Positions 6,201 to 48,524 of a stretch of 64,000 bases of DNA are shown here, piece after piece. Within the stretch, counting starts at the first letter, position 1. Every line of letters begins with the position of its first letter. The stretch is from assembly GCF_003918875.1 (NCBI RefSeq), contig NW_025767224.1, forward strand, positions 1,984,001 through 2,048,000. Direction: 5' to 3'. This DNA comes from Haliotis rubra. Its lineage: Eukaryota. The notes under the pieces were generated by a model. It ran no database searches, was not told the origin of the DNA, and saw only the letters and a program-made list of their open reading frames with translations. Made by a program: the position numbers and the translations under genes.

Positions 6201-8268
6201 CGAGCCAAGATGCAGTTAAAGGCCGCTGTCACCATTTTCATACTGCTTGGTAGGTTTCCGCCTCATTTTCGTTACAAGGAACTCTTAAAAGTTACTTCGA
6301 TGTAACAATCCCATGTTACACAGTATATCGATGCTCATGATGTTGATCACTGGTCGTCTGGTTCAGACTCGATTATATATAGACTGCCGCCACATAGCTG
6401 GAATATTGCTGAGTGTGGCGTTAACCAAACAAACAAACACAAACATGTTGCACCGTGTGTTTGGTTGAAACTGGAAGGGTTTACAGAAACCAAATGGCTG
6501 CATCCATTGTTGACAATGACATGGGCAATATGGCTTCGCGGCTTGATTTACGTGCATATAGACAGTACGACGCTCGCCGAGGCAGACCAGGGTAGCTTAA
6601 TGACTATTCGGCTCAATAAAGAAACTCAACCTGGATGTGCTCTTCCTGTTCAAACTCGTTAAAAAGTAAAACCTGCTGCCGTTTTAGCAAAATTAGAAAT
6701 TTTTAACTTACCATAACTAATGCAAAAATACCACAAATTGTTTGTTTCAACTGTAATGCAATGAACCTGTAGAATTCCTAAGTGGCAGTGGTGTGATATA
6801 TTTAAATTTGCGCTATATTTAGACAGAGTTCTAGAGGCTTCCACAGTGTTCTGACCTAAAGAATATTATCGAAAGATCTGCCTTAGTGTAGAATATTCTA
6901 GTATCTTATTCTTGTGCAAGATATTTTTATGGATTAAACTTCTTTTTTATTTCCCTCACAACGTTTCGGGACCATTCCAGGTCCCTTCATCAGTAAGCTG
7001 GTCCCCGGCTCCCTTTGCGCGTATATACGTATATTGCGATATGCGAGACGGGGTCCAGCTTACCTTCATCAGGTGAACTGACAGTTGAGACTAGGACGTG
7101 GTACAGTATAAGTAAAGTTGAAAACTTGAAGTGTTAATAACATAATGATGATAAATTCATGCTAGATATTATCTAGCATGATAATGATGATCTAGCATGA
7201 ATTTATCATCATTAGGTGGTCCCGAAACGTTGCGAGGGAAATAGAAAAGAAGTTAAATCAATAAAAATATCTTCTATATCTCTACGTACAACTTCTAAAT
7301 GCCACTAAAAGACATGATCTTATTCTTGTGGGGTACCTGTATATTGCCTCTCATCTCCAATTAAATCTCAGGTCACTACAAGATGAGCTTTGTGTGTGAT
7401 GACCATACTCTGCCTACCATCAGTGTCTATATTGGTATAATCACTGCTCTTGTATTGTAGTACCTCTGAATATCTACTGTCACGCACGTTCTACTGTCAT
7501 GGTGATACCTCTGTATTGATTCGACCAGCTTAGTAAATTCTAGAATTCAATTGTTAATTACAACACTTTTCTTTGTTATGAGTTGTTTTCACTCATAGCT
7601 CTCTTACAGCCTGTTTTCACTCATAGCTCTCTTACAGCCTGTTTTCACTCATAGCTCTCTTACAGCCTGTTTTCACTCATAGCTCTCTTACAGCCTGTTT
7701 TCACTCATAGCTCTCTTACAGCCTGTTTTCACTCATAGCTCTCTTACAGCCTGTTTTCACTCATAGCTCTCTTACAGCCTGTTTTCCAGTTTTATGTTTC
7801 AACATTGCAATCAACAAGTAAGAGTTTTCAGATTTAGGAAATCACAATATGTTGGTTAATAACAAAGTTTCTTTGCCAGTGAGTGTACATGTATTACCTA
7901 TACTTCCAGGATTGACGTGGATCTTCGGGTTCCTGCAGATTGAGGATGCTCGGATCGTGTTTCAATACATCTTCACCTTCCTCAGCTCCCTGCAGGGTTT
8001 CTTTATTTTCGTTATGCTGGTAGCAAGAAGGAAGCAGGTTCGCGATCAGTGGTACATGTTGTGTTGCAACAAGCAGGATAATCGTCGCGCTCCTAAACAG
8101 GTGTCTCCAACCAACAGCAACTCAACGTCGTCAAACGGCTCCGGGGGTAGTCTCTCCTTGCACAACAGCAGCACAAGAACTCTTCGCACCAACATAGATA
8201 GGGAGAGCTTTGACTCCGTGTACTACATACCAACACGGAGGATGCCAACAGCCTACAAGGCGCTGTAA
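258..8268 (+). CDS. Adhesion G protein-coupled receptor (GAIN/GPS + 7TM, family B2); 5' part lies left of the window
   Basis: Phase-consistent GT-AG exons 258-502, 914-1063, 1239-1333, 1747-2021, 2553-2728, 3217-3378, 3875-4002, 4523-4785, 5346-5415, 6053-6249, 7910-8268. GPS motif CAFWD...WSTEGC...CMCNHL/TNFAVLL; TM motifs LLHYFILVSFLWMLIEA, YCWM, LLGLTWIFG, SSLQGFFIF; Ser-rich C-tail ending YKAL*. Confidence 0.95.
4203..4304. repeat. Short inverted repeat resembling a Penelope-like element end
   Basis: gatgtcaactttttttt..ttgtatacacaa (4203-4232) is inverted at 4273-4304. The minus strand of the spacer reads ctaacgaaggggc..gcccagaaacgttg, a degenerate CTGANGA-stem-GAAA. Confidence 0.5.
4846..5271. 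mobile_element. Tc1/mariner-type MITE in an aGPCR intron
   Basis: TIRs tactacccatcaaaggtttagactcact / agtgagtctaaacttttgatgggtagta, flanked by TA; no coding capacity. Confidence 0.8.
6917..7316. mobile_element. Penelope-like (PLE) remnant with inverted ends and a hammerhead-like core
   Basis: About 55-bp inverted arms (6918-6975 and about 7217-7273); 14-bp direct repeat atcttattcttgtg at 6903-6916 and 7317-7330; minus strand 6993-6958 reads CTGATGAagggacc-tggaat-ggtcccGAAAcgttg. Confidence 0.65.
7586..7787. repeat. 28-bp minisatellite, about 7 copies
   Basis: Unit gttttcactcatagctctcttacagcct repeated head to tail. Confidence 0.95.
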
Positions 8269-10872: not shown

Positions 10873-11967
10873 CTAGTCAGTCGGGCATACTATGGCTGCA
10901 AGTTACTAGCCCACAAAATAATTGACTAGCCCGAGATTTGTATGTTGAAACCTAAGCAAAAGATTACAAAAATAGATGAGAATAAGATATTGTCGGCATG
11001 ACCCGGGTTTCATCATTAAGCTGCTAATATGAACATTTTTATCTGGCCATAATCATCATTTAAAAGTGTATTATAGCTTAACAAGTCGGAGAAAGTGATA
11101 AATTTACAAAACGACCCCAGCCGGGCCAGTGAATGTGGAGTGTGTGTGGCAGATCATACTGGTCTGCTATCCCACTGCCAGACCATGCGCAGTTTAACAT
11201 GCATGCTCCTTTTGTGACGCAGTACAGTTACTGGAGCAGATTGGTTCTTGTGATATCTTATCGATGCCGACCACCAGGCGGGGTGACAACAAGTACCATC
11301 TTTTAATGTCATTGGGTTTGAGACAGCCAGGGAGCTAACGATCCACCTTGAACGATCTGAGCAGACACTGCATCCACTAGACCACAGAGATACCCTTGAA
11401 GCAGATGGAAAAATAGGTATCCAAGTTGCCACAGAGAAACACTGAGTGACGTCCATGTTTCGTTTCCTAAGCCGAAACATGACCGGAATATGGACAAAAG
11501 CGCTTTTGAATATATCCCTGTTTTGAACTATATATGGCACCTAAGCATGTTCCATGTCTGTCTGGATGTGTGGCACAACAGAACACCCGGCGCTACATGA
11601 TGACATTTAATGGGACCAGTGAAGATGATTATATGGACATATTGTGTACCAACTGCCACGGACCAGGAGATCAGTCCACTCTGGACAGATGTTCCGCCAA
11701 TAACCTTGAAGCTGCCTGAAACAGAAGTACAGAATTAAACTACAAGGAACAGCTTCTGGTTGACATGGTTCATGTGTGTCATTTCAGTGCTTGAACCCAC
11801 GTGACATGACCATCTGGCAATAATTGACTCACTCACCCACCCAGCATAAGTCGCTTTTAATCACACTGTAAGGGGATGTATTACCTAACTCATCACTAAA
11901 CACACCTTAAAGGGATGTCATGCTTCACTCACTCACTACTGACCACACTACAAGGGGATGGCCTCCT

Positions 11968-12832
11968 TCACTCACTCACCTCTAAGAACACTGTGGGGGG
12001 ATGCCCTGATTCACTCACATCTAAGAACACAGCGAGGGGATGCCCTGATTCATTCACCTCTAAGAACACTGTGAAGGGATGCCCTGCCTCACTCACCTCT
12101 AAGAACACTGTGAGGGGATGCCCTGCTTTACTCACCTGTAAGAACACTGTGAGGGGATGCCCTGCTTCACTCACCTGTAAGAACACTGTGAGGGGATGCC
12201 CTGCTTCACTCACCTCTAAGAACACTGTGAGGGGATGCCCTGATTCACTCACATCTAAGAACACAGCGAGGGGATGCCCTGCCTCACTCACCTCTAAGAA
12301 CACTGTGAGGGGATGCCCTGCTTCACTCACCTGTACGAACACTGTGAGGGGATGCCCTGCTTCACTCACCTGTAAGAACACTGTGAGGGGATGCCCTGCT
12401 TCACTCACCTGTACGAACACTGTGAGGGCATGCCTTGCTTCACTCACCTCTACGAACACTGTGAGGGGATGCCCTGATTCACTCACCTGTACGAACACTG
12501 TGAGGGGATGCCCTGCTTCACTCACCTCTAAGAACACTGTGAGGGGATGCCCTGATTCACTCACCTCTAAGAACACTGTGAGGGGATGCCCTGATTCACT
12601 CACCCTTTACGAACACTGTGAGGGCATGCCCTGCTTCACTCACCTTTACGAACACTGTGAGGGGATGCCCTGCTTCACTCACCTCTACGAACACTGTGAG
12701 GGCATGCCCTACTTCACTCACCTCTACGAACACTGTGAGGGGAAGCCCTGCTTCACTCACCTGTACGAACACTGTGAGGGGATGCCCAGTTTCACTCACC
12801 TCTACGAACACTGTGAGGTGTTGCCCTGCTTC
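11968..12832. repeat. 39-bp minisatellite, about 22 copies, derived from the last coding exon/splice donor of the SH3b-only gene
   Basis: Unit gaggggatgccctgcttcactcacctctaagaacactgt. On the minus strand each unit carries cagtgttc(g/t)ta(g/c/a)agGTGAGT. Confidence 0.95.
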
Positions 12833-15800
12833 AGGAACCTGCCTGCAACCCATAACATCAGGGGAGTTGTGATTTCCTGAAACAAACCAGGACACGTCAT
12901 TCCTAACCCTGACCGCCGGTCGAGCAACATACTGAATGATGGCAATCAGGTGCGGGCGGTAGGGTAGCGTATTGGTTCAAGCGTTCGCTCGTCACGCCGG
13001 TCTGATTGGATTCCGTACATGAGTGCAATGTCTTTAGCCTACTGATGTTGTCACCCGACATAATACTGACGGCGTAAAGGGGCGGCGGGGTAGCCTAATG
13101 ATTAAAGCGAAGCCGAAGACCCGGGTTCGATTCCACACATGGGTACAATGTGTGAAGCCCATATCTGATGTCCCCCGCCGTGATATAGCTACAATATTGC
13201 TAAAAACTAAACTTACTCACTCACTGACGGCGTAAGCCTTACTCACTCACTTTACTGAGGTTAGGGGGTAGCCTATAGTGGTTAAAGCGTTGACTCGTCA
13301 CGCCGAAGACTCAGGTTCGATTTCTCCACATGGGTACAATATGTGAAGGCCATTTCCAATGTCCCCCGCCGTGTTGTTGCTGGAGTATTGCTAAAAGCGG
13401 CGTCAAACCAAACTTACTCACAACTGAGGTTACAGGCTGTAGTCTGTTGAAAATGGTATTTTACAGGCGCTTTGATGGTTTCCTTTAAGAACACAGACAG
13501 GGAAAGGAACTTACACTGTCAGTGGATATAAACCCAGCACTGTTTGACGCAATGTCCATAGATATATATAAGTTCATAGCATTCGATATTTGGAATTTTG
13601 CATGGAACAGAAAGTATGACTGACCTCATTCTTGACCATAACACTGTACCAGGAGTCTCCGTTCATCTCCAAACTCTGGCCGTTTGATCGTAGACATTGT
13701 CCAAAACTGAGGTAAGTGATGCTCTCGCTGTCGAAACCAGCTGGAAGAAACAGATTTCACATGAAACATACGCCACACAATGGGGAACCAGCTACCTGGC
13801 CTAGACCTGTGTGTCCTGCATATTTGGGTCCAGGGGCCCGTTTCACAAAGCGATCGTAGCGCTACGACTGTCGTAATTCTATGTTAAAGTATGGGAGTTA
13901 CGATCTTGGCGCTACGCTCGCTTTGTGAAATGGAGCCCAAACTTAAACTTTATTAAGGTGGTCGCGTTTGTTTTGGAACATAAGCGAACTTAGATATACG
14001 ACTGTCGCGATTCTGTAAATTTCAGCCCTTTCAACTCTTCTCGCAGTTTCTCTAAAATGGAGCCTGGAAGGCATTGTCCATGCCACAAAGTGAACAGTCA
14101 CGAGTTTCTGTAGCAGCGATCGTGCAGTATGTTGTTAGTTTCAGATATGTTTGAGTGTAATGTTGGAGTGCGCCAGGGATGTGTTTTAAGCACCCTGCAA
14201 TTTTCGTTGTTCATTAATAATCTTGCTGATGAAATAGAAAGTTCATGTTATCCTGGCATCCAGTTACATCCAGACTTGACTCATCTATTCATATTACTGT
14301 TCTTATTACGTCGTTCTTATATCTGACACTATTGGAGGATTACAAAATCGAATTAACGTGTTACAACAGTATTGTCACTGTTATTATATTTTAACTGTAA
14401 ATTTAGATAAATCTAAGTGGTTGTCTTTAAAAACGGCGGAGTTCTTTCGAGGGGCGAAAAATGGTATTTTGATGGCAATCTTATTGAATGTGTCTCATCC
14501 TATAGATATTTAGGTGTGGTATTTTCTAGGAATCTAAATTGGAATAAGCAGTTTATAAGTTCATCGTTGCAATCTAGAAAAGCATTATTTGGTGTTTTAA
14601 AATGTCTGTCGAAGCTTAGACCATTACCATATGATGTTTTCTTCAAGGGTTTTGGTAGTAAAGTGATGTCAATTGTATTGTATGGTTCTGAAATATGGGG
14701 ACTAGACTTTGATTCTGAATGTTAGATTAGCAGTGCTATTGAATGTTCATGTTCAAGCATGTAAATATTTTCTTGGTGTGAAAACGTCAACTTCAAAACA
14801 TGTTGTTCGTGGCGAGTGTGGGAGATACCCGGTATATATCTTTGCCTATAAGCGTTGCATAACATACTGGTAGAAACTGCTATCCATGCCAAACTCACGT
14901 TTACCCAAGAAAGGTTATAACATGTTAATGTTAGATATGAGCCGGGTAAATGTAATTGGGCTTCAAAACTGAGACTGTGTTATTTAAAATGGGATTTGGC
15001 TATGTTTTGGATAACCAGTGCATTGATAATATTCAGTCGTTTATATCAGAATTTATAGATAGTTCTTACCAACTGAAAATTGAGCTAAATGTATTTATCA
15101 GGAACTTGGACATGCATCTTTGTCACAAGGTTCTACACCAACAGGATAACACTTTCACCAACAGGGTAACACTTACACCAACAGGGTAACAATTACACCA
15201 ACAGGGTAACACTTACACCAACAGGGTAACACTTTCACCAACAGGGTAACAATTACACCAACAGGGTAACAATTACACCAACAGCGAGAGAAATTCCATG
15301 CTGAGTGAGATTGAGATGGTGAGAAAAATTTTGGTAGTGAATGTATCTACGTAAATGATACTTAAGCCTACTTATATAATATCAATAATCTACTTAGGAA
15401 AAGGTATCATCTAGTATCGAATCATCCTGTACATATGTCGTCATTTTGTTAAATGATTTTATTCACCACTTGGCCAACATGCTGCCAAACATCAGAGTTA
15501 AAATACAAAAAGAAACTTGCACATGTTCATTTAACAAAACTATATACATATTTGTATAAACTATGTCAAGCGTTTGTTCAAACTATATACCCTGTAGCTG
15601 GGGTTTAACTTCAAACTTCAGAACGTATCTTCTACGTTGATGTAAGTAACATCTGCGTAGATGTTAAAAATATGTTAGACTGTGACACTAATACTCTTCC
15701 ATAGAATGGAATAAAGTGGATTGTCGATTGTGTTGTTTTGGATATGTGGATCAAATAAATATATTAACAAGCACCTGTTTATAATTATATGTTGTGCAGG

Positions 15801-16474
15801 TCAGATTACATCAATAAGGGAAGTGCAATCTTTCCATTAATACGTAGACACACCTTCAAGATTCAGCCTTTTGAAGGCCTCTGTCACCATTTTCATACTA
15901 CTTGAGGTTTCCGCCACATTCTCATTTCAACGAACTCTTAAAATAATTACTACGATGTAACAATCACATGTTACACCATAAATACGTAGACACACCTTCA
16001 AGATTGAGCCTGATTTGTAATTTCACCTTAAAAACATGAATTTTGATGATATATTTACATTTTATAGTATTTGACTTCTGCAATAAAGGTGTGGTCATAT
16101 GACGCCATCTGCCCCTTACACATATAGCAGTTTTACTGTTGATCAATATATATTATTGTCCTGGTTTGGACACACGGAGGGTAGCCTACTATCGGAGAGA
16201 CATACCACTCCCGTGCCATTATCTAGAACGTTGCACGACCCACCTGCCTGATCCCACGTCCTTCGTGTCTCGGCAACAACTGGAGTTATATAATCTCTCA
16301 TGGCATATAAATTCACAGAATCAGCTAATTATACTCACGTGTTGAATATGCATCAACGAGCCCCTCCGTAACGCACACACACGCGCCGTGTTGGAGAGGA
16401 ACGCCCTCTATTGCAGCCAGGGCCAGTATGGATGACTGCAGGACGGAAAGCAACAAAATCAACATGGCGGACAT
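12802..16474 (-). CDS. Secreted stand-alone SH3b-like protein (108 aa), paralogue of the N-terminal domain of the 20792-30085 gene
   Basis: Exons 16474-16339 (phase 1), 13740-13625 (phase 0), 12876-12802 give MSAMLILLLSVLQSSILALAAIEGVPLQHGACVCVTEGLVDAYSTPGFDSESITYLSFGQCLRSNGQSLEMNGDSWYSVMVKNEEITTPLMLWVAGRFLKQGNTSQCS*. It has a hydrophobic signal peptide and the same intron positions, phases and 4 Cys as the neighbour. Confidence 0.8.
12953..13422 (+). mobile_element. Cluster of three family-A SINEs (one nested)
   Basis: Three A/B-box heads; TSDs actgacggcgtaa (13065-13077 and 13223-13235) and actgaggtta (13254-13263 and 13423-13432). Confidence 0.85.
13834..13938. mobile_element. Hairpin MITE with PIF/Harbinger-like GGG termini
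   Basis: gggcccgtttcacaaagcgatcgtagcgcta ... tggcgctacgctcgctttgtgaaatggagccc; a related end occurs at 44464. Confidence 0.7.
14129..15060 (+). mobile_element. Degenerate LINE reverse transcriptase C-terminal fragment (RTE/RTE-X-like)
   Basis: Frameshifted motifs VGVRQGCVLS..FSLFIN, VNLDKSKVVVF, YRYLGV, LYGSEIWG, CKYFLGVK..VRGECGRYP; internal stops. Confidence 0.8.
15134..15283. repeat. 20-bp minisatellite, about 7 copies
   Basis: Unit acaccaacagggtaacactt. Confidence 0.9.
15871..15976 (+). pseudogene. Duplicated fragment of the aGPCR exon/intron junction
   Basis: Aligns by eye to 6216-6321 with the donor GT deleted; bracketed by a 36-bp direct repeat (15834-15869 and 15976-16011). Confidence 0.8.
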
Positions 16475-20791: not shown

Positions 20792-23700
20792 TCAGTATCC
20801 GAATTGGCAATGGATATGGTCTCCTTCATTCTGCCCCCATCCGTTCATAGAAAAGCAAAGATCCAGGAATTCCTTCGACCTTGACCCGTTGTGAAGGTCA
20901 ACGGCTTGACCTCTGTAATGGCGGGAGTTACAGGTGTGGCAGGCACCAGCTATCTCATTGACCTGTAAAAGTATTCAGGTTGACGAGAATGCATAAATAG
21001 GATATTGTAATGTATGTAATAGTTTGGAAATGCAAACATACACTTTATTATAACATTCGTCGGAGACAGAAATTATAACCAAGTTAATCATTACGTTTAT
21101 GGTCATATTTATCAGTCATTTTATCATCAGGTTAACCGTCACTTTTCATCATCAGGTCATCATCATGCTTATCATCGTGATTCGGTATCAATTACATATT
21201 ATATAACATAACTTTAAAAAGATGACAAAGACAAATAATCCGATTCAATATAATACTTATGTCAGTGTCATTCATTTCTGAATAATATATATATTATTCT
21301 ATAAATGGACCAGACAATCCAGTGATCAACATCATGAGCAGTGTTCTACTCAACTGGGGTTACGATGACGTGTATATAGATTTTATATATACTGAACCGC
21401 AAAAAAACCCGCCACTCCCATTTTGAAATTGGTAATCAGTTTAATTCAAACACATGTAAATAACATAATAATTGTCGGAAAGATTTCAAAATTGACATGT
21501 TTGATAATCAATACTTAAAGACGAATTTCAGAGAATGACAAGTCAAAATGACGACAGGTGGCACGACAGTCAATAACGTATATGGCCTCCTTGAGCGTTG
21601 ACAACAGCGTTGCATCGTCTGTACATGGAGTGTATGAGGCGGTTGATGAAGGCCATAGGAACTTGCGCCCATACTCGGTGATACGCCTGAGAGAGTTCAG
21701 CTGCAGTTGTCGGCCTTGGTCGCACATCATTGAGCCTCCTCTGAATCTCGTCCCACAAGTGTTCTATCGAGTTTAAGTCTGGACTGAGGGCAGGCCATTG
21801 AAGAGCTTGTATGCCGTGTTGACGGAGAAAGTCTCTAGTTGCTCTGGCAGTATGGGCACGCGCGTTGTCATGCTGGAAGACGTGGTTTCCATGACGACCA
21901 AAATGTGGCACGACGAAGGGTCTCAGCGCTTGATCAATGTAGCGAGCAGATGTTACACCATTTCCTCTACCAGGACCAATATTCGGGAACACCATAGGGC
22001 CTAGTTTGTGACTGAGAGCAATAGCACCCCACACCATTATGCTCGGACCTCCCCACGAGTCTATTTCCAGGACACAATCATCTGCAAAACGCTCCCCGCG
22101 TCGTCACCACACTCTCACTTTCGTCGGAGAAGACTACAGTTCGCCAATTCCGATGATGTGTGGCCCACTGGAGACGAGCACGACGATGTCGAACAGTGAG
22201 GATCGGACCCCGGTAAGGCCTGCTACATCTGACGTTTCTCTGCCTTGAACGCCTCCGCACTGTGTCGGCGCTGATTGGTCTCTGGTGATTGCCAATGGTT
22301 GTCTGTGCAGTTTCCGTAGCCCTAGCGAAACGATTTTGCAGGTGATGACGGACAATCTGCCGATTTTGCCTCAACGTTGTCACAGGCGGTCTTCCACTGC
22401 GAGGACGGTCGTCTGTGCTTCCAGTGGCTTGGACTCGTTGCTGCAGGCGGTATATTGTTACATACATGAACAGAGAAATGATTTGCAACCTGTCTTGCAG
22501 TCTGGCCAACATTAAGTCTTCCTAAAGCTTGGTACCTCTGTTCCTTTGATAATCGTGGCATGTCGCTACTGTCGAACAGGGAATGATTCGGTGCATGTTC
22601 GGTGGTTCTTCTTCTTATAGGGATGACACTTCGGGATGCACGTGCATTATTTTCATGAAATACGCACAAAAACCTCGTCCCATCATTACTTTAGTAACTG
22701 CGTTTCGACGACATATTTTTTGTATCAAATACAGCATCTGAAACCAAATTTTCTTGAACATTGGCTACGAACCAGGTCTAGCTAAAATATAAATAATGAA
22801 AAACTAATTAACATTCAGAAGAAACATATCTGGCAAAATGTTTGGTAGGTGACGTTTCTTTTGCGGTTCAGTATATAAAATCAATTTTGCCATTATCAGT
22901 GAATGGTTGGGATATGCTGGATGACACTATAAGATATTTCATTCAATTAAAAACAATTACGAAAAAATATTTATTAGCAATTTGCTTCATGAGACTACAG
23001 AAACTCTAAAGATGGAGCGACTGGGGAAGAGGGTTGAATACACACTCTGCTGAACAGTTATACATCGGTATGTGAGAGTAATAAGTCGCACGTAGGCCTT
23101 AATCATCTAACCCGTCAAGATCCGAACTGATCTTCAGTAACCCATGCTTTTGTAAGAAGCGACCAACGGGATCGGGTGGTCAGGCTCGCTGACTTGGTTG
23201 ACACACGTCATCGTATTACTGCTCACTGCTCCTGCTGTTGATCACTGGATTGTCTGGTCCAGACTTGATTACTTACATATCGCAACCACATTGCTGGAAT
23301 ATTGATGAGTGCGGCGTTAAACAACAAACCAACCAACTTAACCTTTTACCGCCGTCTTTAAACCAACCATCAGCGGCAATTTCTTGGTTCGTGATAAAGA
23401 TCGGGTTCCGATTTTTATTCAATGCCAAATCGGATCCTGACACGGCTAAGGGACACAAACATGCATTACGATATTCCACAGTCGAGGTCCAACTGTGCTG
23501 AAGGCCTTGTAGCCATAGGTTTTAAGTTTATGCTGAGAGTCCGGTGGTCGTAGAACCACGAGCTGCATGTGGTGTAATGTGGGATGTCCTGATGTTCTTG
23601 TAGAACCAATGTAGCCACAAACTATCAGAACTGGTGTTGGAGCAGGTATTATGTATCATAGTGATGTCATGACGTACGACATGATGTTCTTGATAATGTT

Positions 23701-26700
23701 GGTGAAAGCGGCATTTAACCGCACCACAATCCCTGTGTTAGCACAAGCTTGTCTGTAACAACACAACTCTACACAAAAATGATAGTAGTATGAAGTCTAA
23801 AAGTTGGAGGGGAAGTGTTTCAACACGACAGCACGTTATTATATTGCTTGAGAAAGACAATGTATCCTTACATGTATGTATCCTTTCCTCGCCAGAGTGA
23901 TGAGATAGTGGACGAGGTCGTGGTTGAGGCAGATGGTGCCACCAGGAGCTGAGCAGCCATTGCAGGAGTAGCTGAAAGATTGTCATATATACGGTCCAGA
24001 CATATTCGGAAGAGATCATAGACTGTTTTAGCAGTACAGACATATCAGGACTGAGACCACAGACAGTTACAGCAGTACAGACAAATGCAGAAGAGACCAC
24101 AGAGAGTTACAGCAGTACAGACATATGCGGAAGAGATCACAGACAGTTATAGCAGTACGGACATATGCGGAAGAGATCACAGACAGTTATAGCAGTACGG
24201 GCATATGCGGAACAGATCACAGACAGTTACATCAGTACAGACATATGTGGAAGAGATCACAGACACTTACATCAGTACAGACATATGCGGAAGAGATCAC
24301 AGACACTTACAGCAGTACAGACATATGTGGAAGAGATCACAGACACTTACAGCAGTACGGACATATGCGGAAGAGATCACAGACTGTTATAGCAGTACAG
24401 ACATACCAGGACTGAGACTACAGACAGTTACAGCAGTACAGACATATGCGGAAGAGATCACAGACACTTACAGCAGTACAGACATATGCGGAAGAGATCA
24501 CAGACAGTTACAGCAGTACAGACATATCAGGACTGAGACCACAGACAGTTATAGCAGTACAGACATATCAGGACTGAGACCACAGACTGTTACAGCAGTA
24601 CAGACATATGCGGAAGAGATCACAGACTGTTATAGCAGTACAGACATATCAGGGACTGAGATCACAGACTGTTATAGCAGTACAGACATATCAGGGACTG
24701 AGACCACAGACAGTTATAGCAGTACAGACATATCAGGACTGAGACCACAGACAGTTATAGCAGTACAGACATATCAGGACTGAGACCACAGACAGTTATA
24801 GCAGTACAGACATATCAGGACTGAGACCACAGACAGTTATAGCAGTACAGACATATCAGGACTGAGACCACAGACTGTTACAGCAGTACAGGCATATGCG
24901 GAAGAGACCACAGACTGTTATAGCAGTACAGACATATCAGGACTGAGACCACAGACAGTTATAGCAGTACAGACATATCAGGACTGAGACCACAGACAGT
25001 TATAGCAGTACAGACATATCAGGACTGAGACCACAGACTGTTATAGCAGTACAGACATATCAGGACTGAGACCACAGACAGTTACAGCAGTACAGACATA
25101 TCAGGACTGAGACCACAGACAGTTACAGCAGTACAGACATATCATGACTGAGACCATAGACTGTTACAGCAGTACAGGCATATGCGGAAGAGATCACAGA
25201 CTGTTATAGCAGTACAGACATATCAGGACTGAAAGTGCAGACTATTATATGTATTTACATGGGTTAAAGATCGCATTGCATAACTATATATGAAGCCGAC
25301 CTAGATCTGCCTGCAGCATGGCCGTTGCAGGTGTCCCGGATGTTGTTGTAGGAGAAAGCGTTGTCATGGACACCAGAGGGGTGAACTTTCCACAGTTCAA
25401 TCTTGCCTGAATTGTGGAGCTGAAGCAGCTCACAAGCCCACGCCTTTACTTGGGTGTCTCCGCACGACCCTGAGCCGGTGCCAGAGGAGGCTACAACACA
25501 AACCAAATTCGAAGAGCTTCACAATGCAACATGTAACATTAAAGAGCTTCACAATGCAACATATGTAATTAAAGAGCTTCACAATGCAACATATGTAACC
25601 TCGCGCTTCACAATGCATGGTGTCACCTGGTACCTTGCGCTGCAACATGGAAAGAAAAGGATCTACTTGCAATGGAAACGCAGTACAACATACTATGCCA
25701 AACAATACAACGCAGTACAACATTGTATGCCAAAGAACCTTCACGATACAACATGATACTTCAAAGAGCTTCACGACGCAACATGATACTTCAAAGAGCT
25801 TCACGACGCAAGATGAACTACAAATAGCTTAACGATACAACGGAATGCATGATGCACCCTAAAGAACTTCACAGTGTCAAATGATGCTTCAAACATCATG
25901 TACCCCATAGACCTGGACAACGCAGGCAATGCAAATAGATACTTCAAAGAGCTCCACAATACAACCTTGTACCTCTAACAGCTTCACATTGTAACCCAAT
26001 GCAACTCAATAAACAATGATGTACCTAGGGTTCCACAAAACAACCTTGTACCTCTAACGGCTTCACATTGCAAAACAATGCAACTCAATAAACAACGATA
26101 TACCAAGAGCTCAACAATACAACCTTGTACCTCTAACAGATCCACATTGCAATCCAATATAATTCAATAAACCATGACATACCAAGCGCTCCACAATACA
26201 AACTTGTACCTCTAACAGCTTCACATTGCAACACAATACAACTCAATACACAATGGTGTACCATGCGTTCCACAATGCAACATGTACCCTAAAGAGATTC
26301 ACAATACCACGCAATACCCCAAGGAAGTTCACAATACAACCTGTTACCTCCAATAACTTCACTGTGGAACATGGTGTCACAAAAAAACTTCGAAATATAT
26401 TCATTAATTTACAGTATCTCTGTCACAATAAAGGCATCGGCAACGGCATCGTTAAAGTATTGTGTCGTAGTTTTCTGTCAGTATGAAGGTCCCGGATTGT
26501 GAAATGACAGACCATGTTTAATACTTGCTTGTACGAATGGCCAGTCCTAGGAACAGATACACAATTCAAAGGGAAACCAATAGGTGATCCAAATTTCAGC
26601 CGGAGCCTCTGAAACGTCCTTGAAAAGCAAGGATATTGTGGAATGACATATATTAATGGCCATGCAGGGATACGTACCACACTGGGTGGTTGTACCGACG

Positions 26701-29700
26701 TTCAAGTACACCCCAGCCACCCACAGGCGCTGAAACAGTGTATGTATATGTGAATCGTAATACAGGTGAGGCCGACTGTTATCTAGACCGGTATACACAA
26801 TAACGTTATATTACATGTTAGTCATCTGTTTGATTGGCATTTTAGGTTGGTGAGTAATAAGAAAGTAAGATTTTGTCATGGATAACAACTTCTTTATTAT
26901 ATATGATGCGACGTTTCGGTATGAATTCTTCTACCGTTGTCAAGCAACGGTATAAGAAATAGCCACTATACCGTTTTATACCGTTGTCAAGCAACGGTAT
27001 AAGAATCATACCGAAACGTCGCATCATATATTATAAAGAAAGTTGTTATCCATAAAGAATCTTACTTTCTTACAAGTTAGTCACCTTAATTACCAAAACA
27101 TTTATTTCAGTCGTTTAATGGTTCGATCGTCGCGTAACATGGAGCTGTTCCTAGTAAACCCCCTCAATGCTAAACTTGTGCTGCTAAAGTTTATCCTAAT
27201 GTCCCTCATATTATCGGAAGTGAGTTAAGTCTTAGAAGGCCAGTTTCGTTCAATGGCTCGATCGTCGCGTAACATGGAGCTGTTCCGAGTAAACCACCTC
27301 AATGTCCCTTCTACTGATCAATCCATCTCTCATACCTCCGGCATCTGTTTTAAACATAGTTGCTACGCTACGTTCATTCAAGACTAGTTGTCGATGTCAC
27401 AAACACTGTTGAAAACTACTTCTGAGGTGCATCAAATCACTAGAACACATAGTTTAAAAATAAAAATAATCAGATTTGGACAATGTCTGTAGTCGCCAGT
27501 AAGGTGTTAATACTGCAATCGACTGACATCCGCATGGCCATCGCCATGTTGGTTACGAACCGGATGTCGGTTACGTCATGCGTATTTTGATGGAACTGAG
27601 CATGGTCTCGTTAGTCCAGCCAATGTAAACTCCTATATTTCCACTTAGTTCAACCAGGATGGAAAAGCGAACGTGTATAGTGAGTTAACTCCCTTGCCTC
27701 GTAGTGATCAACTTCCCTGATATCACCAGCTTTAACATATATTCGCACTTAGTTGTATTTACATTGTGAACAAAAGATAGGATCTCTGTACCGTACCTGT
27801 CCGCTAACATCAAGCTCGAACCACCTATAAGCTCCCTTCGTGAGAATCCCGCCGTGGAACTTGTAGCATTGCCCAGAGTTCAGTGTCGCCTTCACAGTCG
27901 TTCCTGACGTTCCCGCTGCAATTACCGAAAAAGTCAAACGTTTAGTCCCTCACGTGTATTCGAATGCCCGTCTCCGTTTAGGACTAGACATTAATAAAAC
28001 GTCAGACACTCATGTACATATGTAACAGATTCGACCTTCGTGTACGTGTTAACACATCAAACACTCATGTACATATATGACAGATTCGACCTTCGTGTAC
28101 GTGTTAACACATCAAACACTCATGTACATATGTAACAGATTCGACCTTCGTGTACGTGTTAACACATCAAACACTCATGTACATATATAACAGATTCGAC
28201 CTTCGTGTACGTGTTAACACATCAAACACTCATGTACATATGTAACAGATTCGACCTTCGTGTACGTGTTAACACATCAAACACTCATATACATATGTAA
28301 CAGATTCGACCTTCGTGTACGTGTTAACACATCAAACACTCATGTACATATATGACAGATTCGACCTTCGTGGACGTGTTAACACATCAAACTCTCAAGT
28401 ACATATGTAACAGATTCGACCTTCGTGGACGTGTTAACACATCAAACTCTCAAGTACATATGTAACAGATTCGACCTTCGTGTACGTGTTAACACATCAA
28501 ACACTCATGTACATATGTAACAGATTCGACCTTCGTGTACGTGTTAACACATCAAACACTCATATACATATGTAACAGATTCGACCTTCGTGTACGTGTT
28601 AACACATCAAACACTCATGTACATATATGACAGATTCGACCTTCGTGTACGTGTTAACACATCAAACTCTCAAGTACATATGTAACAGATTCGACCTTCG
28701 TGGACGTGTTAACACATCAAACTCTCAAGTACATATGTAACAGATTCGACCTTCGTGTACGTGTTAACACATCAAACACTCATGTACATATGTAACAGAT
28801 TCGACCTTCGTGTACGTGTTAACACATCAAACACTCATGTACATATGTAACAGATTCGACCTTCGTGTACGTGTTAACACATCAAACACTCATGTACATA
28901 TGTAACAGATTCGACCTTCGTGTACGTGTTAACACATCAAACACTCATGTACATATGTAACAGATTCGACCTTCGTGTACGTGTTAACACATCAAACACT
29001 CATGTACATATGTAACAGACTCGACCTTCGTGTACGTGTTAACACATCAAACACTCATGTACATATGTAACAGATTCGACCTTCGTGTACGTGTTAACAC
29101 ATCAAACACTCATGTACATATGTAACAGATTCGACCTTCGTGTACGTGTTAACACATTAAACACTCATGTACATATGTAACAGATTCGACCTTCGTGTAC
29201 GTGTTAACACATCAAACACTCATGTACATATGTAACAGATTCGTGACTAACACTTTAGTCATTCGTGTTCATCTGTCAGACATTTGACATATTATATAAG
29301 AATCAATCAGATACATTTATTATACATGCAAATGAAGAATACAAAAATGATCCGCATGTACAACCAGACTGATATGACGGTTTACAACCTATTTGCCTTA
29401 ATCCTGTTGGGTATTATGCCACATTCACTTGTCAGATTGTAAAGCATGTGATGTGCAAGGATGGTGGAGTAAAGGAGCGTATTGATAACGTTCGTTACAC
29501 AGGCAAATGAAGTCTTAATAAATATATAATGTTTGGTTCCAGTGTTACTGATCAAAGAGGCATGTCCGTTCTATTCGAATGAATCTGAATGCAATTATGT
29601 TATACAAAAAGGATTGATTTGATGAACGAATTGTGTCTCCCATGTGATAAAATAATAAAGCTTGATTTCTGAATCATGCCATTCGTTGCTGCTTGAACAA

Positions 29701-30085
29701 CAATCCTCAAGGTATCTTGAATTTAACGTGCACAAATATACTGGCAATATGGATTCCCTTATGTCTTTCATCACTTCTCTTCAAGTGAGTGAGTGAGTGA
29801 ATATGATTTAAGCAGCTTTTAACAATATTCCAGCAATATCACGGCGGGGGACACCAGAAATGGGCTCTTCTCTTCTAGAAATAATAAACAATAAGAAACA
29901 TGTAATCTTGATAATGGATTGAGATCTGCCAAAGACGAACAGTTTATAGATAGCATGTGGGTCTTACGTTGGTTCCTGGCATTGACCCCCGCCCCGTGGA
30001 CACAGAGGCACTGTCCGGACTTGAGAGTGGTATGTGTGACGTCAGCAGTGACGGTGGCAACTAGGGCAAGAACCAACAGCATCAT
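20792..30085 (-). CDS. Secreted SH3b-like + zinc peptidase (M15/DD-peptidase/Hedgehog fold) protein, 249 aa; putative peptidoglycan hydrolase
   Basis: Six GT-AG exons 30085-29968, 27915-27797, 26729-26678, 25490-25301, 23971-23872, 20962-20792 (118+119+52+190+100+171=750 nt, all phases match). Translation: MMLLVLALVATVTADVTHTTLKSGQCLCVHGAGVNARNQPGTSGTTVKATLNSGQCYKFHGGILTKGAYRWFELDVSGQRLWVAGVYLNVGTTTQCASSGTGSGSCGDTQVKAWACELLQLHNSGKIELWKVHPSGVHDNAFSYNNIRDTCNGHAAGRSSYSCNGCSAPGGTICLNHDLVHYLITLARKGYIHVNEIAGACHTCNSRHYRGQAVDLHNGSRSKEFLDLCFSMNGWGQNEGDHIHCQFGY*. The gene model is strong; the function is inferred from motifs. Confidence 0.88.
21390..22873 (-). mobile_element. Tc1-family DNA transposon with frameshifted transposase (22561-21570), in intron 5 of the SH3b-peptidase gene
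   Basis: TIR tactgaaccgcaaaa.aaac at both ends with TA flanks; motifs MPRLSKEQR, DRPRSGRPPVTT, VVFSDES, FQHDNARAH, WPALSPDLNSIEHLW spread over three frames. Confidence 0.93.
23110..23337 (+). mobile_element. SINE-like family B copy
   Basis: acccgtcaagatccg..cttcagtaacccatgct..cgggatcgggtggtcaggctcgctgacttggttgacac..gctggaatattgatgagtgcggcgttaaacaacaaacc. Confidence 0.8.
24030..25232. repeat. 40/41-bp minisatellite filling intron 4 of the SH3b-peptidase gene
   Basis: Two unit variants: cacagacagttacagcagtacagacatat + gcggaagagat or caggactgagac. Confidence 0.95.
25510..26350. repeat. Degenerate tandem repeats (about 30-bp and higher-order units) in intron 3
   Basis: Recurring aaagagcttcacaatgcaacat and caaccttgtacctctaacagcttcacattgcaa. 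Confidence 0.75.
26858..27072. mobile_element. Palindrome of about 215 bp resembling tail-to-tail Penelope-like ends
   Basis: taagaaagtaagatt..ggataacaact..atgatgcgacgtttcggtatga is mirrored by tcataccgaaacgtcgcatcat..agttgttatcc..aatcttactttctta. Confidence 0.6.
28006..29243. repeat. 55-bp minisatellite, about 22 near-identical copies, in intron 1 of the SH3b-peptidase gene
   Basis: Unit acactcatgtacatatgtaacagattcgaccttcgtgtacgtgttaacacatcaa. Confidence 0.97.
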
Positions 30086-30423
30086 CGTCGACGACAAATA
30101 AATGTGACACTGGCGTGGTGAAATTCTTTATCTGAGTCTTATAGGGCTCGAAACAATGTATGGCAGCCTGTTCTGGACATAACAGAGACCATTGTTACAT
30201 GAGCGTCAAACAGAATCATTATATGCGTCGTGAACTGCCAGCTAGAACACAAGTTTCCGAAGCCACAATTGAAAAAGGTTGAGTGAACGTTTATGAATTC
30301 AGCAACATTCCAGTAGTATATCAAAGAGAACAACAGCACAGATAGTCTGCAGTTACATCAATTTGTTCAGCCTGTTACATGTATTCGGTTGCATTTAATT
30401 GTAATGTTTCGTGACTTTGCCTA

Positions 30424-31083
30424 AAGTTGTAACGTTCAGGTTGTTAAGTCAGGATGTTCCGTTCAGCGTGTAATGTCAAGTTGTAACGTTCAGTGTGTAA
30501 TGTCAAGTTGTAACGTTCAGCGTGTAATGTCAAGTTGTAACATTCAGTGTGTAATGTCAAGTTGTAACGTTCAGTGTGTAATGTCAAGTTGTTCCGTTCA
30601 GTGTGTAATGTCAAGTTGTTCCGTTCAGTGTGTAATGTCAAGTTGTTCCGTTCAGCGTGTAATGTCAAGTTGTAACGTTCAGTGTGTAATGTCAAGTTGT
30701 AACGTTCAGTGTGTAATGTCAAGATGTTCCGTTCAGTGTGTAATGTCAAGTTGTTCCGTTCAGCGTGTAATGTCAAGTTGTAACGTTCAGTGTGTAATGT
30801 CAAGTTGTAACGTTCAGTGTGTAATGTCAAGTTGTCTATCAGTGTGTAATGTCAAGTTGTTCCGTTCAGCGTGTAATGTCAAGTTGTAACGTTCAGTGTG
30901 TAATGTCAAGTTGTAACGTTCAGCGTGTAATGTCAAGTTTAAACATTCAGCGTGTAATGTCAAGTTGTCACGTTCAGTGTGTAATGTCAAGTTGTAACGT
31001 TCAGTGTGTAATGTCAAGTTGTAACGTTCAGCGTGTAATGTCAAGTTGTTCCGTTCAGCGTGTAATGTCAAGTTGTAACGTTC
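30424..31083. repeat. 27-bp minisatellite
   Basis: Unit gtgtaatgtcaagttgtaacgttcagt; explains the 9-aa-periodic ORFs. Confidence 0.97.
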
Positions 31084-31170
31084 TGGGTGTTACATCAGGT
31101 TGTTACATTCAGGATGTTACGTGAACGAGTTACATTCAGGGCAGTAGGTAATGCTTTCACGTTCAATATA

Positions 31171-35769: not shown

Positions 35770-38384
35770 AACAGCAACAGCACACAACTTTTGTGTCTAT
35801 TTTACGGACAAGATAAACAAAATCAAAGAGGAATTCGATAATGTGGATAGTGAAACTAGCGACACAACAGATTCTACATTGCCTGGAGATCTCAGATTTA
35901 CACTTCAACCGGTCACTGTGGAAGACATTGTCAAGGTATATTGGAAAATCAAAACCCACTACATGTGCGCTGGACCCTATTCCTACAAAATTACTTATGA
36001 AGTATTTAGATGTACTTCTGCCTGTGATCACAAGGATCGTGAATATCAGTCTAGCCACTGATACATTCCCAAATATATATAAACTGACACTGATAAGACC
36101 ACACAATAAAAAGAAGACTTTAGATGTGCAATGCCTTGCAAACTACCGGCCAGTCTCAAACCTCACCTTCATGTCCAAAATTCTGGAGAGTGCTTTTGAC
36201 CTTCACCTGGCAAAGCACCTTTATGAGAACAACCTGGTGAACAAGTTCCAGTCCGCATATCGTCCGAACCATAGCACAGAGAGTGCTCTACTCAGGGTTA
36301 CGAATGATCTGCGGAGCTATGTGGACAAGGTTCCATTGGATCTCTTATCCTGCTCTATCTGTCGGCAGCCTTTGATACTGTTGACCACGGTATACTTACA
36401 GTACGACTACGACAGGAAGTGGGTATATCAGGAATACCACCTTTATGGATACGCTCATAAACTGACGAGCAAAAGAAAGTACACAGGTGTAATTGTTGTT
36501 GCAATCCCAAATATGCGTTCTAACTAATAAAATTATTGAAAAACATTGATTGTATAGAACGCAACCATCATGTTTCATTTGCCAAAAAGCAACCAAAAAC
36601 ATTTGTACGTGTTTTGCACGAATTTTTGCAAAATTGTGATTATTGTCCCATGCACTTTTCTGACAGAGAGTATAAAACCTGTTTGTCGTGAAGACTGAAC
36701 AATCACTAGACAGAAATCTCACGAGGAAATGCCAAGATTGACGTCGGCGCAACGAGAACGGGCCAAAGGAATGACACAAATGGGTGCTTTCAACAGCGAT
36801 ATTGCAAGGACATTGGGTTGAACAAGACAAACCATAATTCGGCTGTTTAACCGTTTCAGTACGACAGGCCAGACATGTGATCGACCCAGAAGTGGACGTT
36901 CCAGAGTCACAACACCCCAAGAGGATCGCTATCTGTGGGTTATTCACCTACGAAACTGGATGTTGACGGTGACGTCATCAGCAGCCACATCATTGGGTCA
37001 TCGCGTAAGCCGATTCACAGTGGCAAGACGACTTCGTCCTGCTGGCATGTATGGGCCTACTGACCGTTGCGTGGAATGGCCTTGACCTTCCAGCATCGTA
37101 GGAACCGTCTGCAGTGGTCATCACTACATCGCTGTTTATTGTTACAATGTCATTTTGCTGATAAAACACGTGTATTGCAGTGTGCTTCAACATACATTTT
37201 CCATTTCATCAAAAGGTTTTGTTATATTTATCTTATTGGAAGAAACACAACCTGTGTACTTTCTTTTGCACATCAGTTAATTTGAGCAACAGACGCCAGT
37301 CAGTTATGCTTGGTGTTACTAAATCTGAAAGTATCGCGCTACCCTGTGGGGTTCCCAAGGATCTGTGCTAGGTCCAGTCCTGTTTGTGCTGTACAGAAGT
37401 AGTCTCAGCTCCAGCCTCAGACAGTATGGGCTGAACCACCATGCATATGCTGACGACACCCAGCTATATCAAGGTTTCAAAGCAAGCGAGCAGTCGGTGC
37501 ACTTGCAAGAACTACTGATTGCACTAAATCAATAAAAACATGGATGGCGTCAAACAGATTAAAACTGAATGATGGAAAAACTGAGGCCTTACTCGGTGGA
37601 CCCAGACAGCGCATCAAACAGTTGAATATCACGTCAGTGGCTGTGGGAGACTCATTCATACCCATTCGCCGACAAAGCAAAGAACCTGGGTGTCATCTTT
37701 GATTCTCCCTTGTCAATGGAAGCCCAAGTTAATCAAGTGTGCCAGACCTGCTACTTCCATCTAAGAAGTATTGGTAATATCCGCCATCTTATTACCAAAG
37801 ACGTAACAAAGACACTAGTCCAACAACTTGTGATGTCCCGCATTGACTACAGCAACAGTCTGTTGTATGTTTTGAGTAAGGATCTGCTGAACAAACTCCA
37901 GAAGGTACAAAATAGGGCAGCTCGTATTGTGAGTCGTGCACCAAAGAGATGCCACATAACACCGGTATTGATGTCCCTACACTGGCTATCAATAGAAGCC
38001 CGGATCCACTTCAAGATCTTGTGTTTTGCCTACCACTGTTTGAATGGTACAGCACCGAGCTATCTATCAGAACTGATCTCACCATACCCGCCTTCACGAC
38101 GTCTAAGCTCTGAAAACCAATGCCTACTTGCAGTACCAAACGCAAGACTAAAATCCTACGGCAACAGATCGTTTCAAGTAGCAGCACCTCAGTTATGGAA
38201 CCCACTACCTCAGAACATTAAAGAATCCCCCACCCTTGAAACATTCAAAACCAACCTAAAAACCTTTCTCTTTAGAAAGTTCTATCCCCACGAACTATCT
38301 CCTCCCGTGAACTTCTCATCTGTGACTATTGTAGCGCCTTGAGCATGCACCTCTGTGGATGGAACCGAGCGCAATATAAATAGA

Positions 38385-48100: not shown

Positions 48101-48405
48101 TCACGTACAGTCGGAGTCGTGGCATGTGTTGACCTTCATCACTCTTCACGAACAGTGGTAGTAGAGGCATGTGTTGACCCTCATCACTCTTCACGAACAG
48201 TGGTAGGAGAAGCATGTGTTGACCCTCATCACTCTTCACGTTCAGTGGTAGGAGAGGCATGTGTTGGCCCTCATCACTCCTCACGTATAGTGGTAGGCCT
48301 GGCATGTGTTGACCCTCATCAGTCTTCACGTACAGTCGGAGTCGTGGCATGTGTTGACCCTCATCACTCTTCACGTGCAGTCAGAGTCGTGGCATGTGTT
48401 GACTG
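45199..48405. repeat. 45-bp minisatellite, about 70 copies
   Basis: Unit tggcatgtgttgaccctcatcactcttcacgtacagtcggagtcg, with a gtggtaggcg variant; explains the 15-aa-periodic ORFs on both strands. Confidence 0.97.
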
Positions 48406-48524
48406 TAATCAGGCAAGCAAATGAGTCAGGAACCTCATGTTACATATGTACCATCAGTGGTCATGGTTTCACCCTAGATATCCGGATTAGGCCTATTTTG
48501 GAAACTTGTTCTGTCGTTGTGTTT

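Follow-up and report, generated by a model that had tools for sequence, protein, structure and literature searches.

In a 64,000-nucleotide stretch of the genome of the blacklip abalone, Haliotis rubra (positions 1,984,001 to 2,048,000 of the forward strand of contig NW_025767224.1, referred to as the window below and containing no runs of N), the gene LOC124252983, which we analyse here as a putative wall hydrolase of bacterial kind carried by an animal, is composed of six minus-strand exons extending from position 30085 to position 20792, with five introns, every donor being GT and every acceptor AG. The spliced coding sequence of 750 nucleotides is translated into a protein of 249 amino acids with 14 cysteines, and this product is identical at 249 of 249 residues to the RefSeq model XP_046542652.1 (P0102), named "uncharacterized protein LOC124252983" of Haliotis rubra. 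The intron borders and the identity to the RefSeq model bear out the first-pass annotation, which had read an in-phase, six-exon gene of 249 codons and 14 Cys among satellites and a transposon. That this is an intron-bearing animal gene is confirmed. A chance open reading frame (ORF) or a pseudogene is ruled out, the product being that of the RefSeq model and the ratio of nonsynonymous to synonymous substitution (dN/dS) being about 0.1.

Used singly, the exons gave no useful match in Pfam, in the PDB sequences or in the protein atlas. An exhaustive phmmer search with the 56 amino acids of exon 6 retrieved 41 proteins, from which the alignments of the family (A1, A2, A4, A5 and A6) were seeded. 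Exon 1 (29968..30085, minus strand as are all the others), the same as in P0102, carries the start codon and encodes residues 1-39 plus one nucleotide, with a GT donor in phase 1; it contains the signal-peptide-like MMLLVLALVATVTA|DV and then the first strands of an SH3b domain (CLCVHGAGVNARNQ). Exon 2 (27797..27915), bounded by an AG acceptor and a GT donor and ending in phase 0, encodes residues 40-79 with the SH3b core (TVKATLNSGQCYKFHGGILTKGAYRWFELDVSGQ) and matches the hidden Markov model (HMM) of the family SH3b domain with E 8.8e-15. Exon 3 (26678..26729; residues 80-96) supplies the final SH3b strands (RLWVAGVYLNVGTTTQC), exons 2 and 3 jointly making a phase 1-to-1 module. Exon 4 (25301..25490; residues 97-159) encodes a Ser/Gly linker followed by the first part of the peptidase domain (the helix KAWACELLQLHN and HPSGVHDNAFSYNNIRDTCNGHAAGRS), exon 5 (23872..23971; residues 160-193) the middle of that domain (SYSCNGCSAPGGTICLNHDLVHYLITLARKGYIH), and exon 6 (20792..20962; residues 194-249 and the stop codon) the zinc and catalytic motifs, with matches to the catalytic HMM of E 3.5e-19, 9.3e-10 and 4.5e-26, respectively. 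The motifs in exon 6 are C201-H202, S206-x-H208-Y-x-G-x-A-x-D215, E239 and H242-x-H244. All the motifs that had been quoted before for this protein (VNARNQPGTS, YRWFEL, GQRLWVAGVYL, SRHYRGQAVD with H208 and D215, and EGDHIH with H242 and H244) are found in the translation.

The introns hold repeats of the host. A satellite of a 55-bp unit (22.7 copies, 27995..29243) lies in intron 1, one of a 79-bp unit (4.4 copies, 25947-26292) in intron 3 and one of a 41-bp unit (30 copies, 23997..25232) in intron 4, while intron 5 holds the minus-strand remnant of a Tc1/mariner element (21570..22669), whose transposase is broken up into two or more ORFs and matches DDE_3 (E 1.5e-12) and HTH_Tnp_Tc3_2 (E 3.7e-8). 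The intron phases in Haliotis are 1, 0, 1, 2 and 0, and their positions and phases are common to the gastropods Gigantopelta (L012) and Biomphalaria (L014) and to the bivalve Dreissena (L013), the gene in Dreissena having one intron more; moreover, the three introns in the catalytic domain of Patella are those of Haliotis. Because of the introns, the satellites, the transposon remnant and the orthologues with the same intron phases, the gene is truly integrated in an animal genome, and contamination of the assembly with bacterial DNA is ruled out. It is noted that many relatives are known only as intronless contigs of 0.9-1.4 kb containing the full protein, which look like spliced transcripts.

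The orthologues of H. asinina (96% identity), H. cracherodii (92%) and H. rufescens share one 90% cluster. With the coding sequences of H. asinina and H. cracherodii rebuilt from their loci (L016 and L017) by using the exon borders of H. rubra, all of which are AG/GT, dN/dS relative to H. rubra is 0.073 and 0.123, respectively, and for the catalytic part only it is 0.06-0.09 in the two abalones, the strongest constraint. The abalone gene is therefore under strong purifying selection.

The AlphaFold (AF2) models of the abalone protein (predicted local distance difference test, pLDDT, 88.4; predicted template modelling score, pTM, 0.71) and of its Gigantopelta orthologue (pLDDT 88.1) both contain two domains, with pLDDT in the abalone model exceeding 90 over most of residues 110-249 and falling below 50 at residues 1-9. 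By inspection, MMLLVLALVATVTA|DV at the N-terminus is probably a signal peptide of about residues 1-14, as had been read before in the same way. Residues of about 22-95 are modelled as a beta-barrel. In a Foldseek-independent comparison with 48,161 PDB chains, this barrel reaches Z 8.4 against the SH3b domain of the phiSM101 endolysin and Z 8.2 against that of B. anthracis GBAA_2967, and it also matches LytB, the SH3-like domains of fungal muramidases and the SH3b domain of lysostaphin, the overall range of Z against endolysin and autolysin SH3b domains being 8-9. At the level of sequence, the family SH3b profile matches the phage lysins Ly7917, PlySb and phiSM101 with E about 1e-3, and Pfam SH3_3 is matched in 24 of 69 family members (best E 1.1e-8). 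The N-terminal domain is thus predicted to have the bacterial SH3b fold, and the first reading of this domain as SH3b is supported by the fold matches and by the SH3_3 matches of other family members.

For the C-terminal domain (about residues 105-249), the solved structures matched by fold include ShhN and IhhN, the N-terminal domains of Hedgehog proteins (Z 7.4-7.9 over about 102 residues), and the zinc DD-peptidase of Streptomyces albus G, 1lbu (Z 5.8-7.2). Predicted bacterial structures fit far better and superpose on it with a template modelling score (TM) of 0.65-0.72 and a root-mean-square deviation (rmsd) of 1.8-1.9 A over 134-138 residues; the clusters are named "Peptidase M15 family protein" and "putative Carboxypeptidase", with Verrucomicrobiota and Actinomycetota as the commonest phyla, and bacterial "Carboxypeptidase" and "Peptidase M15A C-terminal domain" entries of the AlphaFold database (AFDB) are matched with E down to 2.5e-10. 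Against the PDB sequences, the family profile matches Hedgehog N-domains only, with E 8e-5 over about 50 residues and with the zinc motif in register, where CH-x3-S-x-HY-x-G-x-AVD pairs with HH-SEES-LHYEGRAVD of Shh and the terminal H-x-HC with H-I-HC. On these matches the domain is predicted to belong to the LAS/Peptidase_MD clan with the Hedgehog/DD-peptidase fold, so that the structure searches return both the SH3b and the Hedgehog/DD-peptidase folds that had been foreseen from the letters.

In alignment A6, where conservation was counted over 60 mollusc rows and 9 bacterial rows, H208, G211, A213 and D215 are invariant and H202, S206 and Y209 nearly so; of the 60 mollusc rows, 52 keep H244, 50 keep H242 and 47 keep E239, whereas each of the 9 bacterial rows has the full set of H202, S206, H208, Y209, G211, A213, D215, E239, H242 and H244. 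By alignment with the established LAS enzymes, H208, D215 and H244 are the expected zinc ligands, while H242, E239 and H202 are the expected catalytic residues. The LAS clan includes DD-carboxypeptidases, L-Ala-D-Glu endopeptidases and LD- or DD-endopeptidases, and an abalone enzyme might have any of these specificities. Of the earlier description as a zinc DD-peptidase domain, the LAS fold and the H-x6-D/HxH motif stand, and the label "DD" would name one of several possible bonds. In addition, eight of the ten Cys in the catalytic domain (106, 116, 151, 163, 174, 204, 229 and 245) are specific to molluscs, with no counterpart in the bacterial relatives, and would fit a secreted protein stabilised by disulfides.

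All eukaryotic matches with a named species come from gastropods (Haliotis, Lottia, Patella, Gigantopelta, Littorina, Batillaria, Babylonia, Pomacea, Biomphalaria, Physella, Lymnaea, Bradybaena, Candidula and Plakobranchus) or bivalves (Ruditapes, Mactra, Mercenaria, Mya, Dreissena, Mytilus, Ostrea, Crassostrea, Saccostrea and Sinanodonta). In the family, the N-terminal partner of the catalytic domain is SH3b (in both gastropods and bivalves), beta-defensin-like Cys repeats, vWA or none. The members with Cys repeats, from Patella, Littorina, Batillaria and Lottia, carry the NCBI names "lysozyme 3" or "lysozyme 1-like". In the members fused to vWA (P0033/P0065 and P0035, which are metagenome or transcriptome proteins with one to four vWA domains), HxH is lost, reading SVTC and FITC, which suggests a non-catalytic offshoot of the family. 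In Patella caerulea (L015) each beta-defensin-like Cys repeat is a single phase 1-1 exon (3299-3427 and 6691-6828), and in Haliotis the SH3b module is flanked by phase-1 introns; such phase-1 module borders, together with the fixed introns of the catalytic domain, imply exon shuffling around a fixed catalytic cassette.

A quick maximum-likelihood tree of the molluscs and the nine bacterial rows, to be read as indicative only, places the molluscs in one clade with 100% support and the bacterial rows in another, with a long branch between them. In this tree the SH3b genes of vetigastropods and patellogastropods adjoin those of the bivalves and the Cys-repeat forms are scattered, and because of this the SH3b form would seem to be old and the swaps of modules later. 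Two members recorded as "E. coli" (P0079/P0103; MCI3756291.1 and MCI3325484.1) are rejected as bacterial homologues, because they are almost certainly contaminating mollusc cDNA: they lie on contigs of 898 and 894 bp, are full-length and intronless with SH3b and peptidase domains of mollusc type, and are 57% identical to the abalone protein.

The closest non-mollusc sequences that were found are domains of Patescibacteria, mostly Saccharibacteria (loci L001-L011). The hhalign comparison of the mollusc and Patescibacteria profiles gives a probability of 99% and E 2.7e-18 over 137 columns, that is, over the whole domain, in agreement with the earlier reading of an autolysin/endolysin-like gene of bacterial origin. 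Fusion partners of the domain in bacteria are PG_binding_1/3 (P0051), an SLT-like region recognised by eye (P0056), and M23 and phage-tail lysozyme (P0117 and P0118). At 5785-8046 of the Candidatus Saccharibacteria metagenome-assembled genome CAMTYB010000001.1 (L007), it is the first module of a 753-amino-acid protein that continues with GDSL esterase, phage-tail lysozyme and M23 modules, and the neighbours are a 1045-amino-acid Amidase_2 protein and a TraG/VirB4-like ATPase. The partners of the bacterial homologues are uniformly cell-wall-degrading, and a locus of the L007 type may be part of the machinery by which an epibiont attacks its host or secretes proteins. We also observed a comparable run of four same-strand ORFs, with sizes similar to those of L007, in a Nomurabacteria locus (L004).

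With a bacterial homologue as the query, the word-indexed search returned four matches only. The resemblance to actinobacterial proteins that the first-pass annotation had suggested holds only loosely: the clusters of structural look-alikes are mainly from Actinomycetota, but the closest sequences are from Patescibacteria, and no actinobacterial nearest relative was found by sequence, only structure-based clusters in which Actinomycetota is the commonest phylum. No sign of an origin from phage emerged: none of 50,697 phage records was matched in a tblastn search with the catalytic domain, and a scan of viral contigs with the pattern of the bacterial domain gave no relative, the mollusc alignment being too variable for such a scan.

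Based on these data, we lean to the following account of the function, which we hold to be rather likely. The signal peptide would direct the secretion of a disulfide-rich two-domain protein; the SH3b-type domain (about residues 24-96) would dock it on bacterial peptidoglycan; and, beyond the Ser/Gly linker, the LAS-type zinc peptidase (MD clan, M15A/Hh-like, about residues 105-249), with zinc held by H208, D215 and H244 and with H242, E239 and H202 catalytic, would cut a peptide bond in the stem or the cross-link of peptidoglycan. Such an enzyme would serve as an antibacterial immune effector or as a digestive effector that degrades bacteria.

Several observations weigh against this account and are noted here together. 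Pfam SH3_3 matches the abalone protein itself with E 0.11, at 13 bits against a cut-off of 27, and neither Peptidase_M15_3 nor Peptidase_M15_4 is matched in the Pfam scan of this protein, nor anything in the NCBIfam scan. The Z values of 7-9 for the fold matches in the PDB lie in the range that the search tool rates as "middling", and E239 is off by one position from E177 of Shh in the HMM alignment. Moreover, the same motif is retained in the Hedgehog N-domains, whose role is chiefly that of a ligand, and an intact motif is therefore no proof of peptidoglycan hydrolysis. Across the 69 members, Peptidase_M15_3 is found in 9 (best E 0.0039, sub-threshold), Peptidase_M15_4 in 4 (best E 0.032) and HH_signal (PF01085), weakly, in 2 (E 0.021); because the thresholds of these three Pfam families are not reached, we place the domain in the LAS/MD clan and not in any one of them.

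A different possibility is that the abalone protein is a non-catalytic pattern-recognition or agglutinating protein, with the SH3b domain and the cleft binding peptidoglycan without cutting it, like the peptidoglycan recognition proteins (PGRPs) that are not amidases and, as described, the SH3b-bearing MgPGRP5. Hedgehog is an example of a LAS cleft that can serve binding, mollusc PGRPs with SH3b have been reported as binding and agglutinating receptors (PMC11810698), and the loss of HxH in the vWA-fused P0033 and P0035 implies that non-catalytic uses exist in the family. By contrast, the metal ligands and the proposed catalytic residues are kept in the abalone gene and in most mollusc rows (47-60 of 60 per position), and it is the catalytic half that is most constrained, so we regard this possibility as unlikely.

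It might also be thought that the zinc peptidase acts not on bacteria but on extracellular substrates of the host, such as matrix, mucus, shell or a signalling precursor, in the way suggested for the zinc site of Shh. In line with this, the solved structures matched by sequence are those of Hedgehog N-domains only, and a zinc-centre-dependent association of Shh with the matrix has been put forward (PMC8052667). We nevertheless consider such a role very improbable, since the modules found N-terminal to the peptidase in the family are of wall-targeting or antimicrobial type (SH3b and beta-defensin-like repeats), the bacterial homologues sit in wall-degrading proteins with several hydrolase modules, and the abalone protein has no Hint/Hog domain, stopping at residue 249 directly past the HxH motif.

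Concerning the origin, the most economical account, and in our judgement the probable one, is that the catalytic domain passed horizontally from a bacterium to an ancestor of the gastropods and bivalves and would then have gained introns and eight extra Cys. Transfer is favoured because the named matches are from molluscs only, because the homology to the bacteria covers the whole domain whereas that to Hedgehog is partial, and because both domains are bacterial in nature. On the other side stand the scope of the evidence, in which the sole exhaustive search is that with the 56-amino-acid exon and the tree includes one bacterial lineage, and the "lysozyme 1-like" proteins of Lingula with a Hedgehog/DD-peptidase superfamily domain, which could widen the family beyond the molluscs. 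The tree, with its one bacterial lineage and without Hedgehog or other M15 outgroups, bears neither on nesting within the bacteria nor on the direction of transfer.

If no transfer had occurred, the domain would be an old animal domain of LAS or hedge type, passed on vertically with losses in most phyla, or else the bacteria would be merely the best-sampled part of a universal family. The Hedgehog N-domains as the best PDB match by sequence, the Lingula proteins that combine Cys repeats with a Hedgehog/DD-peptidase superfamily domain, the rusticalin-like MD-clan proteins of chordates, coral and placozoans (PMC6339383) and the limited search depth outside the molluscs can all be read in this way. 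However, the match to Hedgehog extends over about 50 residues round the zinc motif as compared with 137 columns for the bacteria, the bacterial models superpose over the whole domain, and no non-mollusc animal is among the named matches of the three large searches; in addition, the rusticalin-like domains are described as matching M15C (2VO9, PF13539; PMC6339383), and no 2VO9 chain is among the matches listed for the mollusc family. Vertical descent thus seems to us an unlikely alternative to the transfer. It is also conceivable, although we think it quite unlikely, that the mollusc domain is a free-standing and catalytically intact Hh/DD-peptidase, derived from the bacterial peptidase lineage that led to the Hedgehog ligand or from an independent second capture of that lineage; if true, it would provide a natural animal enzyme for probing the ancestral zinc site of Hedgehog. 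The three alternatives to a transferred wall-cutting enzyme, namely binding without cutting, action on host substrates and vertical descent, are not mutually exclusive with every part of it. The SH3b domain may have arrived with the peptidase, bacterial proteins with models aligning across both domains being present in AFDB, or it may have been added later by exon shuffling, SH3b being present also in PGRPs of Mytilus and oyster (PMC3308963, PMC11810698).

We turn to the other features in the window. About 4 kb past the 3' end of the gene there is a putative SH3b-only paralogue on the minus strand (12802..16474), with a signal peptide and an SH3b-like domain in three exon-like pieces that weakly match the SH3b HMM (E 0.012, 0.12 and 0.0076); it ends in ...LWVAGRFLKQGNTSQCS and then a stop, and a second set of catalytic exons, for this paralogue or otherwise, is not present in the 64-kb window. 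On the plus strand, an ORF at 52732-54154 has a signal-peptide-like start and many near-identical copies of a His-rich peptide (DFWSHLKHEVENVAHQVGHAVEGAVVANLANSASAILG) with RKR/KR sites between them; judged by its sequence, this neighbour of the hydrolase gene looks like a polyprotein in the style of antimicrobial peptides, and Pfam gives it spurious repeat matches only. Also on the plus strand, ORFs at 35841-38342 with reverse-transcriptase-like wording (...YRPNHSTESALLRVTNDL...) suggest a fragment of a retrotransposon without long terminal repeats. Large satellite blocks lie at about 11900-12900, 30400-31100 and 45600-49200.

Molluscs have no adaptive immunity and live immersed in bacteria, and if the proposed function is true, the family would be an effector class unrecognised so far, standing beside the lysozymes, PGRPs and antimicrobial peptides of molluscs. 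Since farmed abalone, oysters and clams suffer from bacterial disease, this is also of practical interest. One captured catalytic domain would have been recombined with SH3b, beta-defensin-like repeats and vWA by the shuffling of phase-1 exons. As the domain libraries miss the catalytic domain, the genes are labelled "uncharacterized" or mislabelled "lysozyme 3" and "lysozyme 1-like". Moreover, the closeness in sequence to the zinc motif of Hedgehog is relevant to the debated bacterial ancestry of the Hedgehog ligand. It should be noted that the novelty implied at first was overstated, since the RefSeq annotation exists and both animal captures of M15-clan domains (PMC6339383) and mollusc PGRPs with SH3b (PMC3308963, PMC11810698) have been published. 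Captured wall hydrolases are a known kind and the abalone gene is already an "uncharacterized" RefSeq model, while the family itself is new and unnamed; none of the gene or protein identifiers of its members that were tried is named in the literature searched.

We now compare the gene with the known systems. The bacterial and phage hydrolases with SH3b and LAS/M15 domains (the M15A "Peptidase_M15_3" endolysins and autolysins, and the D-Ala-D-Ala carboxypeptidase 1lbu) have the same logic of wall binding and zinc peptidase, the same fold and the same H-x6-D/HxH motif, and an AFDB "Peptidase M15A C-terminal domain-containing protein" aligns to query residues 25-257, covering both domains. Unlike them, the abalone gene has five introns, a predicted eukaryotic signal peptide, and eight extra Cys in the catalytic domain; it falls short of the Pfam M15_3 threshold, and its short H202-x5-H208 spacing resembles that of Hedgehog, not that of 1lbu. 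The hydrolases of Patescibacteria and Saccharibacteria (P0040, P0041 and P0050-P0056) are identical to the mollusc domain at every proposed catalytic residue, with an overall identity of about 22-30%; they are without the mollusc Cys and without SH3b, the domain being embedded in proteins of 170-950 amino acids with PG_binding_1, SLT-like, GDSL, phage-tail lysozyme or M23. The Hedgehog domains ShhN and IhhN, which belong to the "Hh/DD-peptidase" group reviewed by Roelink (PMC6027127), have the same fold, with the motif HxxxxxHYxGxAVD...HxHC in the same register; by contrast, the sequence match is confined to the C-terminal half, and the abalone protein is without the context for lipid modification and has SH3b as the partner. 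Molluscs are not mentioned in that review (PMC6027127).

The nearest counterparts in the literature, rusticalin-like proteins known from tunicates, amphioxus, coral and placozoans, consist of beta-defensin-like Cys repeats and an MD-clan peptidase and have been proposed to be acquired horizontally (PMC6339383). They are likewise secreted, as predicted here for the abalone protein, of about 250-270 amino acids, and their MD-clan domain is of proposed bacterial or phage origin (PMC6339383; PMC7379824). Their Cys repeats have a counterpart in the Patella, Littorina and Batillaria members, while the abalone protein has SH3b instead; by the published descriptions the rusticalin-like domains match enzymes of the M15C/VanY type, and the matches of the mollusc family are of the M15A/Hedgehog type. 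Listed in the supplement of PMC7379824 are "lysozyme 1-like" proteins of Lingula (A0A1S3KGF4, A0A1S3ITZ8 and A0A1S3IU05) that combine Cys repeats with a Hedgehog/DD-peptidase superfamily domain, and Cys-repeat proteins of Lottia and Crassostrea with "no domain found". Relatives of the Cys-repeat branch were thus already on record, though not as a family, and the family may extend to the brachiopods.

Finally, we note that the proposed capture in the abalone has parallels in captures of other enzymes. The amidases Dae2 of ticks and the NlpC/P60 proteins of Trichomonas with SH3b are bacterial wall hydrolases captured by eukaryotes. The phage-type lysozymes of bivalves are another captured bacterial wall hydrolase (PMC5303276). 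All three are of the kind proposed for the abalone gene, in that a captured hydrolase comes with introns and a signal peptide and has a presumed or shown antibacterial action; the abalone gene differs from them in its superfamily, that of the LAS zinc peptidases, and in the clade of its host.

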